In this document: positions 7,444 through 22,128 of the stretch, piece by piece
Layout: the number at the start of each line of letters is the position of its first letter
Position numbering within the stretch: position 1 is the first letter of the stretch
NCBI GenBank assembly: GCA_001179505.1
Contig: CDMY01001028.1
Coordinates: forward strand, 62,001 to 126,000
DNA length: 64,000 nt
From: Vitrella brassicaformis CCMP3155
Taxonomy: Eukaryota; Protista; Chromerida
Direction of reading: 5' to 3'
The notes under the pieces: generated by a model
What the model was told of the DNA's origin: nothing
The model's database searches: none
Seen by the model: only the letters and a program-made list of their open reading frames with translations
Position numbers and translations under genes: made by a program

Positions 7444-10285
7444 CGACAGACAGACAGGCAGCCAGAAAGACAGACAGACAGGGAGGAATAGTAAGGCAAT
7501 GGGGTTGGTAGGTAGTGGGTTGGTGGCTTTTGTAATCCCGCAAAGCGGCGTCGGTGCCTGTCTGCTCGTTGGTGACAGCTCGCTCGTGAATGTGTGAATT
7601 CGCACGTGCCCAGGTCCACCCATTCATACTTCTTTACATTCGTACATTCACACGACACCCACCACATGTGCCTGCAGACGAGGCGGTCACGGCACTGCGT
7701 CGACGTGCGTGATTGCGTGTACTCACTGGGCGGGCGTTGACTCGAGTGCGTTTCTCCATGCCCCTCTGCCTGTCTGCCTGCCTGCCTGCCTGTTTGCCGG
7801 TTTGATGTGCGCTTTTCTGCTCTGCTCGGACGGTTGTTCGCATATCTGCGCTGTCTGTGTGTGGAGTGAGCCGAGAATTTATGTAGCAGGGACGAACCAA
7901 TGGCGAGAGAGAGGAGGCCCTGGCTGGGTGGTGCGTGTGTGGGCTGTGTATATCATGTGAGGGCGTGCGAGAGTTTGTTGGTGGCCAAGCCATCCGCGCA
8001 CCTTTTTGCACGTACGGCTCGCCAGATGTTTGTATGCATGGGTGCGGGCGGGTGTGTGGGGGTACGAGCAGATCTCCTGAGGATGTGTGTGTCTGTCTGG
8101 TAGCTCTCTGTGTCAACGGTGCGTGGGTGGAGGATGGCGGTGTGCGGATGAGTCTCGTGGGGGCCGGCAGTGAAAAGAGAGGCTGTCGGTAGTCGGTAGG
8201 ATGAGCTGCAGACAGAGGCCCTCAAGTGTATGAGGGGACGTGACTTTATTTATGTGTGTGTGCACGGGAGGGACCAAGTGACGCACGTCGGATGTCTGAC
8301 ACGCCTTGCAGCTGAGAAACAGACCGACAGCCAAGGGACAGACAGACAGCCAAAGGGAACCTGAAAATGACCTGCTGACCTGCACAAGTCCGATACTTGC
8401 GGACACACAGAGGTCAGCACGCTGAACGCCTGCCCTCGACGTGAGATGACCGAACACACACACCAACAGAACTGTCGCACCACACTACACCAGTGCCCCC
8501 GCCTTAAACCACCCAACGAACGAATCTGTCGTAGCCACTTCGTCACTTGAAGCGCTCTGCTGGTAGGCAGTCAGTCGTCACACATGCACGCAACACACCA
8601 TATTCCATGCAATCCCACTGTCACTGTGTGGCCCTCTCTTTGTGTGTGTCCCTTCCCTTTGTGTAGCTGGTGTTGGTGTCTCTGGCAGCCTGACTGATCG
8701 CCCTGCTCTCCGCTGCCGCACGTAATGAAGAAACGGACACGGACACCAATACGCTGGCGGACTCGGCCATTCATCCATCCATTTGTATGTGTGTGTTGTG
8801 TGCGATGCATTTTGTTGTGGTGGCTGCTTCTTGTGGTCGGCTGTTTGTGGGTGGCTGTTTGTTGGGTACCCGCAGCTGCGATAGGTGGCGACACGAGCAC
8901 AGTGCTGACGCGCCCGGCGGCCTACATCGCCGCAAATGTGGTTCTGTTGCTGGTGCTGACGGGTGGCCGATTTGCTGCGGCAATCATCACTCGGCGTGCA
9001 GGGATGCAGTCTGATGGATGACAGCCAAAGTGCCCATCGACCACATGGCTGAGGGCCATCGCAGACCTCTCACAGACACAGCCTTGGGCACAGCCGCAGC
9101 ACCCCAAGGACACGAGGAGACACATTCATGCAGTGAGTGACACTCAATTGTGTGCGTGTGTGCGTGTGTTGTGGTTGAACAAGGGCCGTTTTGTTGTCTA
9201 GGTGACGTCGTCATTGTGGGGCCTCACTCGGTCAGTCAGCCGAATGCAGACAGACACATATGCTATGCATTGAGTGGGATGTGTTGCTCAGCCCATGCAC
9301 TGTCGAGTCCTCCCTCATCTTTGTGTTTATTGCTCGGCCCTCTCTGCCGCACTGCTACGCTTCCAGCACACAAATACGCACACACCCAAAGACGCTGTCG
9401 GTCGGACATTGGAACTCGTGTGTGTGAGTGTGTGTGTGTGTGCGTGTGATAGCGCACCACCCACACACTCGACTTCTGCTTCCCTCGCTGAGTCACCGCA
9501 GCGCTAGGCGAGGATTGCTTTGCCATTTTCTCGCGATTGAGTGAGTGTTTGACAGTCAAAATCCGTTCACAGTGATCAACGAGGCACGCTGCATGGCGCA
9601 TTCATCACAACGAAGAATGTGCACACGGCGAAAAAGAGTCATGATCAGTCTGTCAGTCTTTCTCTTATGAGACGAAACGATCAGTTGGTCAATCTTTTGT
9701 TGCGCAAAAATCAAAGCTCACCATCCACCCATCCACCCACCCAGCCATCAACGACAGGCCACGCTCACACACGGCGTCGTCATCGCCATTATTCGACTCA
9801 ACACACACGCACACATAGCACAGGAATGCACAAATGACTGACAGCTCGATAGATTTCCTAAGCTGTCTGTCTATCGACGACAAAAATCACAGTGCGTGCG
9901 TGCGTGTGTGTCTCCGACACGCCCACACCACGGATGGACAAATGGAGTGAGTAGGGAGGGAGGGAAAGCAAATGATTCGCGCGTACGTATTGCATTCTCC
10001 GCTCTCTCTGAGTGAGCCAAAGGAATTAAGAGCAACATGCAAGGGAAGGGAAAAGCCCAGATCGAGTGAAGTAAGTGGCACAGCACATGCATGTAGCGAA
10101 AACTCACTGATGAATGCATCTACATCACATCCACGGCGCGGCACACGGAGGGCGGGAGCATCCAACTGGGATGCATTAATTACGCTGATCGATCGTACGA
10201 GCCCTCACTCCATTCTCTTGCCGTGCGATCAGTCTCCTGTTGTCGCCCGAGATGGCGAACGAAAGTGCACAAGTCACTCGATCGA

Positions 10286-10670
10286 TCACGGCGGATTGAG
10301 AAGCTCATCACGCGTAGGCATGCAGAAGCCAGGATTTGGGCCGGCACACGTCAAAGAGCAACACTCGCTGTCTGACCAATGAACCAACAACACATCCATG
10401 CCATGATGTAGCTATAAGTGACTGACTCATCGTGCACACCGCCGTAGCACGCGACTCCCAGGGGTCTGCAGCCGGCGTCTGCGGAGCCGCCCTGCAGCAA
10501 CCGCAGGGTGGGATGCTTCGCTGAAGGGAACACACACGCACAAGTTTCTCTCTCTGTTTGCGTGTCGAGTGCCTACCATTGGCAAGTTGGTGCACCACGC
10601 CGACTTGTGAGGCTTCACATCTTGCGCCGAGAAGGAAGATGGCCAGCAGCACCAAGGAGGAAATCCGCAT
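10286..10670 (-). CDS. Secreted inhibitor-cystine-knot (conotoxin-like/knottin) prepropeptide, 89 aa
   Basis: Exons 10670-10577, 10520-10427 and 10367-10286, both introns GT-AG. Protein: MRISSLVLLAIFLLGARCEASQVGVVHQLANAKHPTLRLLQGGSADAGCRPLGVACYGGVHDDECCSLTCAGPNPGFCMPTRDELLNPP*. It has a signal peptide and a C-X6-C-X8-CC-X3-C-X7-C framework. Confidence 0.75.
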
Positions 10671-11314
10671 GACGACAGACAGGCCGGCTCGTTGCCCATC
10701 GATGGATAGATGCGCGTGTGTCCGCGTGTGCAGGAGTGATACTGTCCTCATCGTGGCGGGATAGAATACATCCGCGGCTGTCGGTCGGTTAAGGATTTGA
10801 CGGGACACCTCTCCCTAAGCCCAGCAGCCTTCCCCGCCGCAACGCAACCAGGCATCTTCTCTGTCCTAATCCACGCAGAATGCATGCACAAGGTTTGCCC
10901 ATGGTCACAAAACAGTATGAAATAATATCGAAACGGGGTTTGAAGGCTGCGTGTATTAATATTACAGCGACGTCGACGTGGCTGGAGAGAGAATGACAAA
11001 GAGCCGTGTGGAGATAAAGGAAATCGACAAGTGTAGACGTCAACTTGGGATGTAGCGGTTGACTCGTCATATGCAGACACACACAGCAGGCAGGCGGGAA
11101 AAAAAGATGCTTACTCAATGACCAAGGCAGAATCAGATATACACCAATTCAGACCAATAAAAGGTGTCACTTGTGTCCTCGCTCACACAGTCACAAAGGC
11201 GTGGACACGACACCGACATCGATGAAAAACAGCATCAATCAGCACAAGTCTCTCGTGACCCACTTGACCATCAAATCCATCCCCTTCTTGTCCTGTCTCC
11301 CGCCCTCAAGACGG

Positions 11315-14300
11315 CTACTTTGCCGCCTTCCGCTTCGGCTTCGGTATGAAGAGGCTGCCTTCCCCCCGCTTAAGCATAGGTGGTGCGGCCTGCACCTGCA
11401 TCGGGCGAAAAGAGGGGGGCTGGGGTGGGACGGGTGGTCGGGATGATGATGCAAACGCAGCAGTGGCGGGGGGCGGGTCTGGCGGTGGCGGTGGCGGTGG
11501 CTGTGGCTTTGGGCCGGGTGGTCGGCGGGGATTGGGAGCGTCGTCCGCTAGCTTCATCTCACGACGCTTGCTCGGTTTGGCACGGGAGGGAGGAGAGCCG
11601 GCGGTCGGCTGGGCAGCAGCTGCTGCTGGTGGAGCTGATGCGTCTGGTGATGCATCTGCTCTCTTCTTCCGGTCCTGTGAGGCAGGCCGTTCCCGTGGTT
11701 GCTTGCTCGAAGGCCGCAAGCTGATTGGGGACGGTCCTCTTGCCTTGTTGTCGTCCTTGTCAGCGTCACGCCTTCTCTTTGGGGACAGCTCCTCACCACT
11801 GTCCTTCTTGCGTTTCTTATCGGCCTTGGCACTCCCCTTCTTCTTGTCGCCCCGGCGGCCTCGCGACCCGTCATCGCGCTCCCTTCTTCTCGCACCATCG
11901 GCTGACGTATCGCCCAGTGAGAGGCGACCTAACGACTCTTGCACACCTTGCACACTTCGGTCCAGGGTGCCGAAAAAGGCGTCAATAGACCGACGCAGCG
12001 CCCTCTCGCCAAGCAGCACATTCCTGTCGCTGTTGTCTGCGGCGCTGGCGGCTGCGGCTGCGGGTGCAGGTGCAGGTGCGCGGTCATCGCATCTCCCCCT
12101 CCAATATCGACCAGGCTGACGCTGCGGTTGCTCTTGGTCATCGATCTTGATGTAGCCCCCATTCCCGTCGTTGAGGCCTTTTGCATAGCGCACGAGGCGC
12201 TTCCACAGCGGGTGAGTGCTCAGGGTGGGCGCATTGCCCACCACCCACAAGGCATCCCGCGCCCGAGTAATGGCAACGTTCATCCGTCGCGTGTCCGACA
12301 CAAACCCCAGCAGGTTCTGGCTGATGCCCCTGCCGCCATCCCTGTCGCTGCGGGGCGACCCAGTCTGGCTGAGTGTCCCGTCCCCGCTGCTGTCTTGCTG
12401 GCTCTGAGACGATGCGGGCTGCTGCGGGGCGTGAACCGACGCACGCACACACGAGAAGATGATTATTCGGGCCTCGCGGCCTTGTATCGAGTCGATTGTC
12501 CGAACCTCAGGCTGGCCCTCGATGAACGACCTGTCGGCGAGTAGGCGTCTGATGAGGACAACCTGCTGCTTGTAGGGGCACAGGACGACGATCGACGAGA
12601 GACTGAGTGGGTGCGGGTTGTCCTCAGAGGGGTTCTGGTGGAAATGGTTGCGGAAGAACTCCAACAACTGGCAGATAAAGAGGGCCTCCCCGCGGTTGGA
12701 CAGGGAGAGCGAGTGCTGATTTTTGCTCTCGGGGGAAGGAAGGTCGAAGAACACGAATGGGCGCAGAACGGGATGGCACGCGAGGCGAGGCCGGATGACC
12801 ACAGAGTTGTCATTGATGATCTGGTTCTGGTAGAAGCAGGCAGATGGGAAGCCGGCGATTTCCGGAGCCATCCTGTATTGCGTGCGCAGCATCGACACGG
12901 GCCAGCCCCCTTCCTGCAGCCGCTGAAAAAGACTCCGGTCGTAGGAGAGACGTTTGGCCTGACAGATACGGGCACACACACACACAAACCCAATGGACAT
13001 ACATCGAACAGGCAGATGGAATGGACAGGTGTTCGTATGCGCACCTGCTGCGACAACACGGTAGCAGGGAGCTGCTGTGGATCGCCCAGAAGGATCATGC
13101 GCGTGAGGCCCAGCCGCAATGGGATCCTTGCATGGGGAAGACAACAGATGGAGAAAGTGTCCCGAGGTGTATCGATGGTGTGCGGATGTTCACTCACAGT
13201 GTGGACAGCTCCACCGCTTGTGCGGCCTCGTCGACGATCACACTGTCAAACGGGGCAAAGTCACCTGTCAGGGACACACCCAGAAGCGGACATGGAGGAG
13301 GGTCATCCATGACCGAATGCAGAGTTCCCTCTCTTGTGTCACCCACCCAGGCACTCTGTCGCCGATCCAGAGAGGGTCGCAAAGACGATGTCGGCGCGAC
13401 GGAGGCTCTCCCGACGGCACCGCCCACGACACCCCTGCACGCGCCACTCCAACCACACAGACTGCATCATGTCGGCGGTGCCTCTTTTCACCCACCCACC
13501 TCGAGTTCGGATTCCATCTTGGCACGTATGGCTTTCTTCTCCTTGGTGAGCTCAGCCTTCTGATGCCGCAGTGTGTCCAGCTCCGCACTCTCGGGCATCA
13601 GCCTGTCAATCTCATCCAGCTGCATCTTGAGCTTCTCTAGCTGCTGAGCGTACTGGTCCCTCACACCCGACTGCGTGGCGCCCTCGGACTCACGCACACG
13701 GACCTCCAAGGAATATGATTTCAGCTCAGGCCGGGTGATTCGCTCTGGATGGCCGACACGAACTATGTTCGGGTCCCATCGGGATCCACCGGGGGTGAAG
13801 AGGCCATCCCTCAGCACGCGACACGCCACCTCATCCACTGCAGCATTGGATGGTGCGCACACGAGGATCTTCATCCTCAAAGGGGCCCGCTGTGATGCCG
13901 ATGCCGATGCTGCTGCTCCTGATGCTGAAATGGGGGAGCCGACAATGTCCCGGGTGTCCCTAGCGTCCTGCAGGATGAGTCTGCGTTCCGCCAGGACGGA
14001 TAGCAGCGCGAGCAGTGTGGCCGTCTTGCCCGTGCCGGGCGGTCCTTGAAGCAGCGACAAGCCGAGCTTCGACGTCACGGCCTCCTTCATCGCCGCAGCC
14101 TGGCACAAACCACAGACACATCAGGCATCCATACGCACTGACCCTGCCCACACCTCCGCGCACCTGTGACTCATTGAGCTTATGGTGCTTGGCCAGCTTG
14201 GGCAGCATCTCGTTCACACGTGCCACAACGGCGCCCCCGCCCTCACTCGGAGGCAGTGGAATGGCAGGTTGCTGGCCTCTCGTGGTAAGCTGGGATGGCT

Positions 14301-17300: not shown

Positions 17301-20300
17301 TGACATAGCAGTGGCTGACAGATGTCAGGGATGGGTGACACACAAGAGGAGCAGGTGCATGGGCTGTAACTGACCCGCCCACCGACCCACCGACCTGCAG
17401 CTGAGCGGCGTGAAGGCGATCGGTCTCGTCGCCGCATGTCCATGCCTGCCTCCCAGCCAGCACGATGACCTCGTCGCCATTCGCCGCTTCACTGCTCCCC
17501 TTGGCCTGGCTGAGGGGCACCAGCAGCTTCAGCACGTGTGTGGTGTATGAGGTGGTGCCGCTGATCAGCAAACTGGCTAATGACTCGAGAGCCGACTCGA
17601 AGAAACGCTCCTGACGACGGCAAGAAAGGGAAGGCTCCACACCTGTTTTCGGTCATGCCTGCTGCCTTGCCTTGCCTTGCTTTACTCACGCACACGCGCA
17701 CCGGGAGGTATTTCTCGCGGTGCTGCTGCAGAGCGACGACCTCCCGAGGCAGCACCGGCGGCACACCTGAGGTGGGAGTCAACACATAGACACGGCGCTG
17801 CATGTCCGTGTGTCGATCGCACCGGCTCCCTCGTCCGTCTGCACGTCAATCACCGCCCCAGGCGCCGCATATTTGCGCAGCCGCTCCACGAGCGCCCTCA
17901 CCATCAGGTCGACAGCCCGGTCCAGCACCGACAGCAGGGCCTGCGTCTCGGATGGCATGCCAGTGAGGTTGGAGAGCGGGACCCGCTGAATGAATGCTGG
18001 GACGAGCGACCAGAGGGAGGTCATGAGACCGCCCTCCTCCCACTCCTGGGGATTGGCGTGAGACGCCTTGAGGGCCACGGGGAGCAGATGGAGCAGCGGT
18101 GACAGACCTGATATGCCGATGAAGCATACAGGCAGGACGCTTCATAAGGGAAGGGTCTGTTGCTCTGCCCACCCTCCCGGCCACCCACCTTCGTTTGGTC
18201 TGCCCTGATGTACCCACCCATCCGGAATCCCCTGCCTCGCATCGCCGCCACCACTGCCACTGCTGCGAGCCCCCGCACTCGCCGACGGCCGGTCATCCCC
18301 CAGGGCAACAAAGCCGTTGGAGCGATGAACCGCCTGCTGGAAGGCTCTGGATGCCGCATAGAAGAGGGACGTGACGGCCGTCGCCCGCAGCTGACACACC
18401 GAGTCGCCCCACACATCACGACGCAACGTCAGGGGCGGCAGCGACTCGCTCTGGCCCTCAGACGCCTCCATCCCGCAGCACTGGCAGCCGGCCAACCCCG
18501 CGTGGCACACGCACACCAAGTTGGGCCGGTCACCTGGGTCAGTGGCCACCGCTGACGTGATGACCCGCTCCAGCGGAGGAAGGATCGTGCGCAGATGGAC
18601 GAGCAGCATGGGTTCAGGTTGGGGGCTTGGCGCGTAGATGTCGACCTCGGAGATTCTGTCACGGTGTGCGATGAGAGTGAGGAAGAGCACCTGGGAGAAA
18701 GTCGTGAGCGCTTGGTGGTGGGAGAGGGGGGAGGGGGAGTCCAGGTCGATGACGGCCGATGCCGAAGAGGAGGGGGACATGACGGACGAGCTGAGAGAAG
18801 CAACATGGTCCATGAGCTTGACGGACCGCGCAACAATGAGGGCGAATAGCTGCTGTGGCTGAGAGAGGCTGGAGAGGCTCTCGGCCCAGTATACCAGCAA
18901 CTGACGGACAGACGGACGGACACAAAGGGGGCATCCATGAGTCTGTGGCATTCTCTCTCACTGGCTGACCTGCATGCCCTCGATCGCCGCCCGCGCTACC
19001 GTCTGCCAGACGACCAGTTCATATGACGGCCCACCCGGGCCTGCTGCCGCTGAGTAGAGGCCCTGCCCTCCCTTCATCAGCGCCACATGGGCGATCGTCA
19101 GGGAGGCATCCACAGCGTCACATATCATCGACAAGACCTGTACGGAGGACGATCAGAGAGAACACAACAGAGGATGGAGTGGGGGAGCCTCTGTTGGTTG
19201 GTGCATCCATGGCGATCCTACTTTCTCCACAGGTCCCCCTAGCTCGTCGGCACCCTTCCTGGTGACCTCGGCTGCCATTCTTTCCATCTGCTTCAGCCAC
19301 CCGTCCCCCCCGCCCGCCTCATCCACATGATGCCCATCCATGGCGGCAGCGCCCCGCCTAGCCTCCTCCTGCAGAGCCCGGAAGGCGTGAAGCATCGCGG
19401 CCGCCAGGGCGACTGTCTCGCGGGGCACCGACGCACCCAAACCGCCCTCCCTCTCCGCCCATGACGCGCCCAGCCGCAGAAGGTTTTGAGTGGCGCTCAG
19501 ATACCACTGAGTGACGCCGATGAACGGTCTCGACAGCGTCGCGCCGCTCTCCTGCTGCTCCCCTTGGTGCGTCAGGCCGATATGACCGAGCAGCCCCAGC
19601 TCAGAGAGAGAGCTGACGGCGCGCCACCCTCTGCACTGGTCGATGGCTCGTGCCAGCGATGGCTGGGGGGGAGTCGTCTGGGGGAGGGTCGTCACAAGGC
19701 CACGCTGCAGAGTCACCAGAGCTTCGTATGCATTGGCGGCGATGCTGGCGAGCAGCCGTGGGTCTCGATCGCCATAGTCGATGGCTCTGTCGATTCCCTC
19801 ATAGGCGATGCGGCGGACAGAGGGGGACGGGTGGCACAGCAGGGAGAACCAACACGACTGGAAGAAGCTGTGGGCGCCAGACAGAGGAGCCGTCATCATC
19901 AGCAGCTCGTCCTCATTCTCGGCCCCATTGGCCGCGACGTCACGCTCGGCGGGCGCCTTCGCGAACATCTCCGCAACGGCGGTAATGACATCGTCCTTCT
20001 CCTGTTGCCACAGCGGCATGACTTGCCCTTGGCACAGATAGTAGTCGCCATAGCAGCAAGCCTCAAACACAGCCGACTCAAAGGCTGGGTTGCCTGCCCC
20101 GAGCCGCAGAGCGTTCTCCACTCTCTCCACATCCCACCGCCGCAGCTCCGCCATCCTCTCCCTGACGTCCTGCTCGTCCTCGAAGTGCTGCGTCAGCGCC
20201 CTCTCTAGCTGACGCCGGTGGTAGTGGTATGCTATGACGCAATCCCTGCAGCCGGGGAAGGTCTCGATGGCGAACCGATTGTATACCCCCCGCACGTTGG

Positions 20301-20562
20301 TTCGCAGGAAGACACAGAAGATGAAGCGGGCGGCGTCGTGACTGTGCGAGGTGTCACAGAAGGGGTGGGCAGCCGATCCAAGAGCCCTCAGTGACTCGTC
20401 GAGAGCAGTCAGCGGCCTCCCCTTCTCGGCATCCTCGAGTAGCCTCTCCAGCCCTCCGTCATCGAAGTCCAGTAGCCGGCAGAGGACAGAGCCATCGGGG
20501 AGGGCTGCATCAGTACCGTTGCCGACCCGCCCCTTGTTGAAACTCGCCGAAATGTGCTGCAT
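11315..20562 (-). CDS. SETX: Sen1/senataxin-like SF1B (Upf1/DNA2/NAM7 family) RNA/DNA helicase, multi-exon
   Basis: Helicase motifs: LLQGPPGTGKT, ILVCAPSNAAVDE, ADIVFATLSGS, IVDEAAQAVELSTL, LLGDPQQLPAT, YDRSLFQRL, MLRTQYRMAPEI, TIDSIQGRE, GFVSDTRRMNVAITRARDALWVVGN. The long helical N-terminal region contains a CxxCxxxYH motif (GCRDCVIAYH) of the Sen1 N-terminal type. The C-terminal tail is basic and Pro-rich. Confidence 0.9.
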
Positions 20563-21199
20563 CTCTGGCCGGCGGCTGCTGTCGTCACGTTGTCGCTGCA
20601 GGTCGCATGAAATGGTCGCTACGTGCCGCTTGGACTCCGATGTCCGCCGTCATGGTGACAATGTGGACGGATCTGCGTCACTTCCACTCCATCTATCGCG
20701 TGTAGAACAGCGGCTGTCAGATTATCACCGTCAGGATCCTCCAAGGAAGACTGTCGAAGCAGACAGAGGTCCGCCTGCTCGCAGCTCTCATCCGCGAATT
20801 GGGCTAGTGCCCAATTTGCGCCTTTAAGAAACAACACGTTCGGCAGACAAAACTTTCGATCACGATCGTACGGAAGAGAAAAGGAAAAGCGGTAGCGGTG
20901 TTGTGTTGCTTGTAGTACTACAGACACTTCAATATGTCGAGAAGCTTCGTGTTTTTTGTCATGTTTGGACCAGTAAGTATTAAACTGATGTACCCTAAAG
21001 CTTCAAGTTAGTGAACAAAGCTTGGCCGTCCCCGGTCCTCCCTGAAACCGCTCTGCTTGAAAAAGATCGCGATTGCCTCGCGCGGAGAGAATCAACGAAG
21101 AAGGGTCTCTCTGGGCGCGAACTTCTTAAAAAAGCAAGATCCGTAACGGAAGAAGCATCAACTGACTGAACAAACACACGAACGCGCCAGTTTGTGGTG

Positions 21200-22128
21200 G
21201 ATGGATGTTTCTCTTGTCCGTTCATCCAGCTGGTTGAGCTTGGTTTTTCTTGGGTGCCTTCTCGCAGGTCCCTCAGTGCCGCATCGACTTTGACGAGCTT
21301 CTGGAGCTTAAAGAAAGAGATCTCGCCGACTATTGTGCAGTGGACTTGGTAGTGGATATGCTTGCAAGACTCCTCTCTGCAAATGCGGTTACCATCGACT
21401 GTCTGCTGCTTCCCGCTCGGCGCCGCAGCGTCTTCTCGCCACTCTCGAAGTCATCGAAGATGTGCAGGAGCGAATCGATTGTTGAGCCTTCGATATTGGT
21501 AGGTGCTGCCAGACACAGCCAGTGTCGGCATTGCAGTNNNNNNNNNNNNNNNNNNNNNNNNNNNNNNNNNNNNNNNNNNNNNNNNNNNNNNNNNNNNNNN
21601 NNNNNNNNNNNNNNNNNNNNNNNNNNNNNNNNNNNNNNNNNNNNNNNNNNNNNNNNNNNNNNNNNNNNNNNNNNNNNNNNNNNNNNNNNNNNNNNNNNNN
21701 NNNNNNNNNNNNNNNNNNNNNNNNNNNNNNNNNNNNNNNNNNNNNNNNNNNNNNNNNNNNNNNNNNNNNNNNNNNNNNNNNNNNNNNNNNNNNNNNNNNN
21801 NNNNNNNNNNNNNNNNNNNNNNNNNNNNNNNNNNNNNTTGCAGTTCAGCAGAACAAGCCTTCACAGCTTTGATGACGTGTGTTTTGCCGGTGCCGCCCTC
21901 GCCGGTCCGGCAGATGCGCAATGGCGCGACGTATTTGTTGTCCCGCATGTCTTTGTAGTGGTTCAGCAAGTGGCTGCAGATGATTCGGAACGCCCGCATC
22001 TGCTCTTCGTTCAATCGGTAACGGCTCGCCCAGTGAACAGAGAAGGTCCTGTCGTCGCTCGTCTCAGGTGGCTTGAATGCGGACGCCGGCTGCGCCAGGA
22101 CCAGTGGGCAATCGTGTGAGGCTGGCAC
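21200..22128 (-). mobile_element. Degenerate PIF1-family helicase of Helitron type (transposon relic)
   Basis: Reads LNEEQMRAFRIICSHLL...LRICRTGEGGTGKTHVIKAV (Walker A), then LAAPTNIEGSTIDSLLHI (eroded APTGxAAxxIxGxTIHS). After a frameshift and stop it reads IVGEISFFKLQKLVKVDAALRDLRE (eroded IIDEISM...LxxIDxxLR). There are no introns or microsatellites. Confidence 0.75.
21538..21837. other. Assembly gap (300 N)
   Basis: A run of 300 N, flanked on both sides by TTGCAGT (21531-21537 and 21838-21844). Confidence 0.99.

Follow-up and report, generated by a model that had tools for sequence, protein, structure and literature searches.

A predicted knottin fold for the pre-pro-peptide of an annotated, uncharacterised gene in the alga Vitrella brassicaformis

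Introduction

Does a coral-associated, photosynthetic relative of the malaria parasites encode a secreted cystine-knot peptide, and, if it does, is that peptide kin to the conotoxins or only similar to them in its architecture? The question is raised by a short minus-strand locus of Vitrella brassicaformis CCMP3155, lying within a 64,000-nucleotide stretch of DNA (the window, meaning that whole stretch; all positions below are counted within it). The original prediction, drawn from the letters of the sequence, had placed at this locus a "hidden" gene of three exons for a conotoxin-like precursor. Knottins are very stable miniproteins that serve as toxins, inhibitors, antimicrobials, and drug scaffolds.

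The gene is real and transcribed, it encodes an 86-residue pre-pro-peptide, and it is annotated yet uncharacterised. As computed from the contig joints, its three coding exons add up to 94+81+86 = 261 nt, that is, 86 codons and a stop (Table 1). In a protein database search the spliced product is 100% identical, across 86 of 86 residues, to an existing protein (P0001), which is named "unnamed protein product [Vitrella brassicaformis CCMP3155]" at NCBI and "Uncharacterized protein" in UniRef, and which has no recorded Pfam domain. The gene can thus hardly be called "hidden", because its exact product is already in both collections, and for "hidden" genes in general the existing annotation should be consulted; the same record bears out the suspicion that the host was a chromerid. 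Gene prediction in the Vitrella genome paper was guided by RNA-seq intron evidence. A chance open reading frame is ruled out by transcription together with a cysteine-conserving paralogue, shared intron phases, and dN/dS values well below 1.

The gene model itself being already public, what is apparently new is the reading of the annotated gene as a knottin; in the literature searched, no paper mentions Vitrella alongside knottins, conotoxins, or cystine knots. New here are the fold assignment, the two-gene lineage-specific family and the host group, while the evidence so far holds no pointer to a new mechanism.

Gene structure and transcripts

The features of the locus, and of its paralogue elsewhere in the genome, are collected in Table 1. 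Exon 1 carries the start codon (10670-10668), a signal-peptide-like leader (residues 1 to ~20; 10611-10670), and the onset of a conserved pro-region. Exon 2 covers the pro-region (KHPTLRLLQGGSADAG) together with Cys 1 and 2 of the core (CRPLGVACYG), and exon 3 encodes DSECCSLTCAGPNPGFC, with Cys 3-6, followed by a conserved tail, MPTRDELLNPP.

Table 1. Coordinates of the gene, its parts, and its paralogue (window positions unless a scaffold is named)
Feature	Position	Strand	Remarks
Exon 1, coding part	10577..10670	-	94 nt; ends in phase 1; X1 record 4, X2 record 8
Intron 1	10521..10576	-	56 nt, GT..AG; joint 10520/10577 in X1 and X2
Exon 2	10440..10520	-	81 nt; X2 record 8; translation as in P0001
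Intron 2	10372..10439	-	68 nt, GT..AG, phase 1; joint 10371/10440 in X2 record 8
Exon 3, coding part	10286..10371	-	86 nt including the stop, 10288-10286 (TGA)
Knot core, first to sixth Cys codon	10322..10470	-	residues 49-75; interrupted by intron 2
3' UTR, at least	9595..10285	-	X2 record 8 unbroken over 9595-10371; X1 record 3 covers 9534-10396
5' UTR or possible N-terminal extension	10671..10751	-	in-frame upstream ATG 10751 in one assembled transcript (P0002)
Paralogue	G000:C86 90520-91019	-	exons 91019-90926, 90820-90701, 90638-90520 (manual model)

Part or all of the locus DNA is present in eight public runs. Two of these, X1 and X2, come from the same study and are guessed to be RNA, the sole backing for that guess being their spliced joints; they were compared with the DNA runs X3 and X5 over window positions 9000-12000. 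All of these data are assembled contigs, from which expression levels and transcript ends are not readable. The intron 1 joint is found in both RNA-type runs, while X3 and X5 run continuously through the same positions. Contigs of X1 and X2 extend 5' as far as 10690 and 10677, respectively. The fully spliced form is seen in a single 959-nt contig, X2 record 8, which covers 9595-10371, 10440-10520, and 10577-10677 and is the only one spliced at intron 2. The locus is therefore transcribed and spliced, as the contigs of the RNA-type runs attest.

Set against these contigs, the three-exon architecture with GT-AG junctions that had been drawn by eye survives in outline, with intron 1 placed exactly (10576-10521) but intron 2 bounded differently. 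The predicted second intron (10426-10368) would have produced a joint, 10427/10367, that occurs in no contig; the observed donor lies 13 nt upstream of the predicted one, and the acceptor used is the proximal AG of the tcAGacAG sequence. We reject the predicted intron 2 because the joint 10440/10371 is observed directly and because the corresponding intron of the paralogue sits at the same position in the gene. It had been argued that the distal AG was required, with the proximal AG destroying the knot, yet this is true only in combination with the predicted donor: with the donor at 10440/10439, both the reading frame and all six cysteines are kept at the proximal AG, and the argument from knot loss fails.

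The consequences for the protein are modest. The exons as first drawn do join into 89 residues with the core described for them, but the actual product is three residues shorter. The cysteine order C-C-CC-C-C stands, with a spacing of C-X6-C-X5-CC-X3-C-X7-C in place of C-X6-C-X8-CC-X3-C-X7-C. Loop 2 of the core reads YGDSE and not YGGVHDDE, the codons for "GVHDD", together with the predicted donor, lying inside intron 2. Because that stretch is intronic, the likeness that had been suggested between a "VH.DECCS" motif and baculovirus conotoxin-like (ctl) peptides falls away. A plausible hand-drawn splice model can evidently err in detail while the biological idea behind it survives.

Intron 2 is partly retained among the transcripts. 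It is present in X1 record 4, which is unspliced through 10369-10520, and also in the MMETSP transcript behind P0002, a 114-residue protein from the same locus that matches it letter for letter with intron 1 out and intron 2 in. P0002 begins at the upstream in-frame ATG 10751, so that 27 residues precede the leader, and it is without Cys 3-6 of the knot. DNA likeness between the paralogues starts ~20 nt upstream of ATG 10670 and is lost further up, a pattern that speaks for ATG 10670, where the annotation begins, being the start that is conserved. ATG 10751 was considered for that role and set aside, the stretch 10671-10751 being unalignable with the paralogue.

Without splicing, the frame at 10308-10808 (minus strand) is open for 166 codons from a GTG, or for ~120 codons from ATG 10670, and lacks the knot; a prokaryote-style ORF caller would therefore report the wrong protein here.

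Several features of the surroundings may be recorded. The upstream neighbour on the same strand (11315-13144) is a 609-residue ORF with a strongly matched AAA_12 helicase C-terminal domain (Pfam PF13087, E 3.8e-52), a superfamily-1 helicase of the Upf1/DNA2 type, and it is transcribed (RNA-type contig X1 record 7, 11055-12000). Small dispersed repeats of 20-45 nt lie at 10780-10822, 9536-9569, 9149-9170, and 11477-11503, identified by near-matches with few mismatches in many DNA and RNA contigs; an apparent "joint" from 9169 to 11480 in a DNA run is a match between such repeats, not a deletion. The G+C fraction dips to 0.47 at window positions 20001-22000, the remainder of the window being at 0.52-0.64.

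A single paralogue

Queries of the locus DNA, exon 1, and exon 3 against the organism's own genome (72.7 Mb, 1064 scaffolds) return exactly one further locus, on scaffold C86, so that the search for a family that the original prediction had called for yields one paralogue. Both introns of this second gene are GT..AG and in phase 1, they interrupt homologous codons, and their donor and acceptor contexts are the same as in the window gene; the gene structure thereby provides independent support for the donor and acceptor seen in X2. Our manual model equals P0003, the 116-residue product of an MMETSP transcript, from residue 7 of P0003 onward, P0003 itself starting six residues further upstream at MRMPVV, so that its span on C86 is 90520-91037. 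P0003 is recorded only from MMETSP and not in the NCBI/UniRef genome annotation, where the gene may be missing or modelled differently.

The two genes are 82% identical in the DNA of exon 1, and in exon 3 their products share 63% identity over 27 residues. Kept in both proteins are a leader of the form MRI..LLAI.LLGARCE, a pro-region SQVGVVHQ.LA..KHP.LR.LQGG, and a tail PTR..LLN.P, as well as all six of the core cysteines, the D/E-CCS letters around the CC pair, and G-F-C at the last cysteine. The two differ in length in the linker before Cys1 and in the last loop, the core loops being 6/5/0/3/7 in the window gene and 6/5/0/3/10 in its paralogue.

Predicted fold

The core cysteines of the window gene product (residues 49, 56, 62, 63, 67, and 75) follow the C-C-CC-C-C order, spread over ~25-40 residues, that is expected of a knottin. 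An AlphaFold model of P0001 residues 44-86, built from an alignment of two rows in which the paralogue is the sole other sequence, has a mean pLDDT of 83; the corresponding value for the paralogue model is 70. With so shallow an alignment, AlphaFold may be recognising the cysteine pattern alone. In the window gene model a hairpin at 23-25 and 30-33 pairs the strands that carry Cys5 and Cys6, and a short helix covers RDELL. The paralogue model has a full three-stranded sheet with the same C-terminal helix.

The likeness to a cystine knot that had been proposed holds up in these predicted models, both of which match knottin peptides. Foldseek against the PDB gives no significant E-value, and ~45 of the best 50 rows are knottins, drawn from spiders, cone snails, sea anemones, sponges, and plants. 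At the top of the list is poecitoxin-1a, which aligns over 30 columns at an rmsd of 1.7 Å, with 40% identity and a probability of 0.98. A second-look aligner gives as its best match Z 4.4 and rmsd 1.9 Å over 34 of 35 residues; by absolute standards all of the structural E-values and Z-scores are weak, as is expected for 35-residue domains. When the comparison is made independently of Foldseek, 53 of 48,161 PDB representative chains reach a Z of at least 2, and nearly all of these are either knottins or related disulfide domains of the colipase, Dickkopf, or IGFBP type. For the paralogue model the matches include bleogen, SOTI-III, asteropsins, tachystatin A, PAFP-S, and spider toxins, with unrelated rows of low TM-score mixed in. 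The three-dimensional likeness is a property of predicted models throughout, and on that footing the six cysteines would probably pair into three disulfides to give an inhibitor cystine knot (knottin). The defining pattern of that class is I-IV, II-V, III-VI, with the third disulfide threaded through the ring that the other two close.

Could the peptide instead be a secreted six-cysteine molecule with some other disulfide pattern, LEAP-2-like or otherwise compactly folded? The best Pfam match and the best PDB sequence match are indeed both to LEAP-2 (PF07359, 17.4 bits against a cut-off of 27; E 0.055 in the PDB), and the models of our peptide come from an alignment of two sequences. Yet LEAP-2 has four cysteines, the match is limited to "RP.G..C..DSEC" and falls below the cut-off, and as a structure LEAP-2 ranks far below the knottins (Z 2.3, rmsd 3.7). 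The C-C-CC-C-C order with loops of 6/5/0/3/7-10 is, moreover, typical of knottins, and we regard a different pattern as unlikely.

Leader, pro-region, and proposed route

The N-terminal signal-peptide-like leader that had been noted is present: it has a basic N-terminus and a hydrophobic stretch of ~12 residues, with Kyte-Doolittle values up to 2.9, and small residues occupy -3/-1 in A-R-C or C-E-A (putative cleavage as ARC/E or CEA/S). We propose that this hydrophobic leader (MRISSLVLLAIFLLGARCEA) would direct the precursor into the ER and be cut off near residue 20, a predicted cleavage that would also remove a seventh cysteine (residue 18). The remaining six would then close three disulfides in the predicted knottin, with its Cys5-Cys6 β-hairpin and, at the C-terminus, a short helix that is conserved. 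The conserved KHPxLRxLQGG pro-region is probably a processing or sorting element. What results would be a small, acidic, protease-stable peptide bound, most likely, for the outside of the cell, the cell wall, or a secretory compartment, where on release it could bind an external target tightly in a role of defence, competition, or inhibition.

Of these functions, an inhibitor-type or defence-type binder is our best guess, offered with low confidence. The mature part has a pI of ~4.3 in the window gene and 4.05-4.3 in the paralogue, which has no basic residue between its cysteines; so low a pI weakens any reading of the peptide as a classical cationic, membrane-active antimicrobial. Taken as a whole, the explanation that we consider likely is that of a real gene for a pre-pro-peptide of predicted knottin fold with a signal-peptide-like leader, proposed to bind a target outside the cell.

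Release from the cell may be questioned on the ground that leader and pro-region might sort the product to the complex plastid, the ER, or an apical or other secretory organelle, leaving the peptide to act within the endomembrane system. In chromerid plastid proteins a transit peptide comes after the signal peptide, and the C-terminal tail of our product contains RDEL/REDL-like letters. Pro-region and tail are also conserved as much as the knot, which suggests that they hold sorting or processing information. Against internal sorting, the region after the leader is short (~28 residues), neither rich in Ser/Thr nor strongly basic, and begins with no aromatic residue; the RDEL-like letters stand away from the C-terminus; and miniproteins with three disulfides typically belong to oxidising surroundings outside the cell. 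Internal sorting is accordingly, in our judgement, distinctly improbable, and we keep the outside of the cell, the cell wall, or a secretory compartment as the proposed destination.

The pro-region invites one further speculation. KHPxLRxLQGG fits the K-X4-R rule of convertase-type sites and also contains R-x-L. Canonical PEXEL (RxLxE/Q/D) and TEXEL (RRL) motifs were considered and rejected, R-x-L alone being present and position 5 being Gly. The element KHP(T/S)LR(L/S)LQGG is nevertheless strictly conserved, ~18 residues past the predicted signal cleavage site. There is perhaps a slim chance that the two genes are the first alveolate knottins and that this element is an R-x-L-type site cut by a protease like plasmepsin V or ASP5; it could alternatively be a K-X4-R convertase site, and cleavage before Gln would permit a pyroglutamate N-terminus. 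Were a plasmepsin V/ASP5-like cut to occur, a free-living relative of the Apicomplexa would already employ the processing step that parasites went on to use for exporting proteins.

Selection between the two copies

Estimated by the Nei-Gojobori method from two genes, and hence from small counts, dN/dS lies at 0.15-0.37 in every part of the protein; for the core it is 0.15, or 0.26 when the cysteines are left out. Purifying selection thus acts between the two copies. Venom-type diversification, which would show as dN/dS > 1 in the mature part, finds no place among these core values from the two genes. Leader and pro-region are better conserved than the knot loops, and synonymous divergence is lower there as well, with a dS of 0.48 against 1.7 for the core.

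These values bear on whether the window gene is a decaying or noise gene, poorly expressed and poorly spliced into no product, with only its higher-covered paralogue functional. Retention of intron 2 in X1 and in the MMETSP transcript, with a truncated product lacking core Cys 3-6, would suit such a gene, as would the higher word depth of the paralogue in the RNA contigs (65 against 8-14), although word depth is a poor measure. An intact frame, canonical splice sites, a fully spliced contig, the retention of six of six cysteines, and the low core dN/dS all argue otherwise, and we hold decay to be very improbable indeed.

Searches for relatives

When 1.84 billion representative proteins are searched exhaustively with phmmer, P0001, P0002, and P0003 are returned and, beyond these, only repeat-protein noise, to which P0004 and P0006 belong. 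A word search of a 5.8-billion protein set with a profile of the two paralogues likewise finds P0001, P0002, and P0003 only, and scans of IMG/VR viral contigs and of JGI metagenome contigs find no relative; a look-up of contigs encoding P0001 likewise yields no record. In these searches, no sequence relatives outside Vitrella are thus detectable. Since with a 30-residue cysteine-rich domain only fairly close kin are visible, "restricted to Vitrella" is to be read as restricted as far as HMMER sees. Within that range, what emerges is a lineage-specific family of two genes for peptides of predicted knottin fold.

The kinship with conotoxins and ctl peptides that had been suggested does not hold. 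All of the relevant Pfam families score under their curated cut-offs: Conotoxin (PF02950, which includes baculovirus ctl) gives 12.5 bits, E 0.3, against 25.1; Conotoxin_I2 (PF17557) gives 12.1 bits over the whole sequence and 17.0 for the domain alone (E 0.006) against 27, over profile positions 1-19 of 38 only; and Toxin_23 gives 11.5 bits against 22.2. On these scores, membership of the conotoxin, ctl, I2-conotoxin, LEAP-2, and Magi-5 families was rejected. After LEAP-2, the PDB sequence search lists venom knottins at E 0.13-0.8. A feature search of the ESM Atlas puts a spider Toxin_12 cluster first (0.86), by the tool's own calibration a lead only. Because the Pfam scores fall short, the PDB E-values are weak, and the feature neighbour is no more than a lead, we do not assign the peptide to the conotoxin, ctl, or spider-toxin families.

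True homology with animal conotoxins or baculovirus ctl peptides, acquired for instance when a virus or an animal host passed the gene on horizontally, is in our judgement very improbable. In its favour stand the identical cysteine framework, the sub-threshold Conotoxin and Conotoxin_I2 matches, and the likeness of the model to conotoxin GXIA (Z 3.5, with 38% identity across 29 aligned residues). Against it, the Pfam scores lie well under the cut-offs, and spiders, cone snails, sea anemones, sponges, and plants all contribute to the nearest structures, without preference; two spliceosomal introns shared with the paralogue lie within the coding region, no relative was found in the viral contigs scanned, and the "VH.DECCS" stretch is itself intronic.

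By shape, the closest entries of the ESM Atlas are two unnamed clusters of 93-94-residue proteins (TM 0.68-0.69, rmsd 1.4-1.5 Å over 36 residues), with 50-54 members and a bacterial label that rests on one known member. In the language-model feature search, unnamed clusters of the same sizes take second and third place (0.85). The unnamed clusters may be similar precursors from metagenomes.

Significance

A two-gene family with a knottin fold and without sequence relatives would widen the known range of that fold, its host being a photosynthetic alga that is associated with corals and related to the malaria parasites. The family would also provide a small, easily synthesised candidate for studying how such algae interact with bacteria, grazers, or hosts, and its conserved pro-region and tail make the processing of peptides in a free-living apicomplexan relative simple to approach.

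Comparison with known systems

LEAP-2 (2l1q) has the best raw sequence scores of any known family, and differs from the predicted Vitrella peptide in the number of its cysteines and in its fold. The Pfam Conotoxin family and the peptide agree in their cysteine framework and, about the CC pair, in the letters "ECCS..C".

Some of the best structural matches, especially for the paralogue, are to acidic or plant-type knottins: the asteropsins (2lzy, 2n3p, 3q8j), Spinacia SOTI-III (4aoq), the EETI-II-derived chains 6msu and 7nam, PAFP-S (1dkc), and bleogen (5xbd). Asteropsins are likewise acidic marine knottins, and the "GPNGFC" of EETI-II resembles the last loop of the Vitrella peptide, "GPNPGFC". 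The EETI-II-derived chains reach 44-48% identity over 23-25 Foldseek columns; the likeness to this group as a whole is short and local, with non-significant E-values. Squash inhibitors, for their part, are without the adjacent CC pair and have in loop 1 a basic P1 residue that is absent from the Vitrella paralogue.

With the knottin class represented by poecitoxin-1a (9ep7), omega-theraphotoxin-Pm1b (7jpm), and conotoxin GXIA (6cei), the Vitrella peptide shares the C-C-CC-C-C framework and the predicted Cys5-Cys6 hairpin, and its gene shares the precursor layout of signal, pro-region, and knot. It has no significant sequence similarity to these families, however, and its core is acidic (pI ~4.3). 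Unlike the known knottins of spiders and cone snails, it carries a conserved C-terminal tail of at least 11 residues, predicted to be helical, its host is a photosynthetic alveolate, and its introns fall inside the knot-coding region. The likeness to conotoxins and spider toxins is thus one of fold and precursor layout, and it is most likely convergent, or else too old to trace, rather than a sign of family membership.
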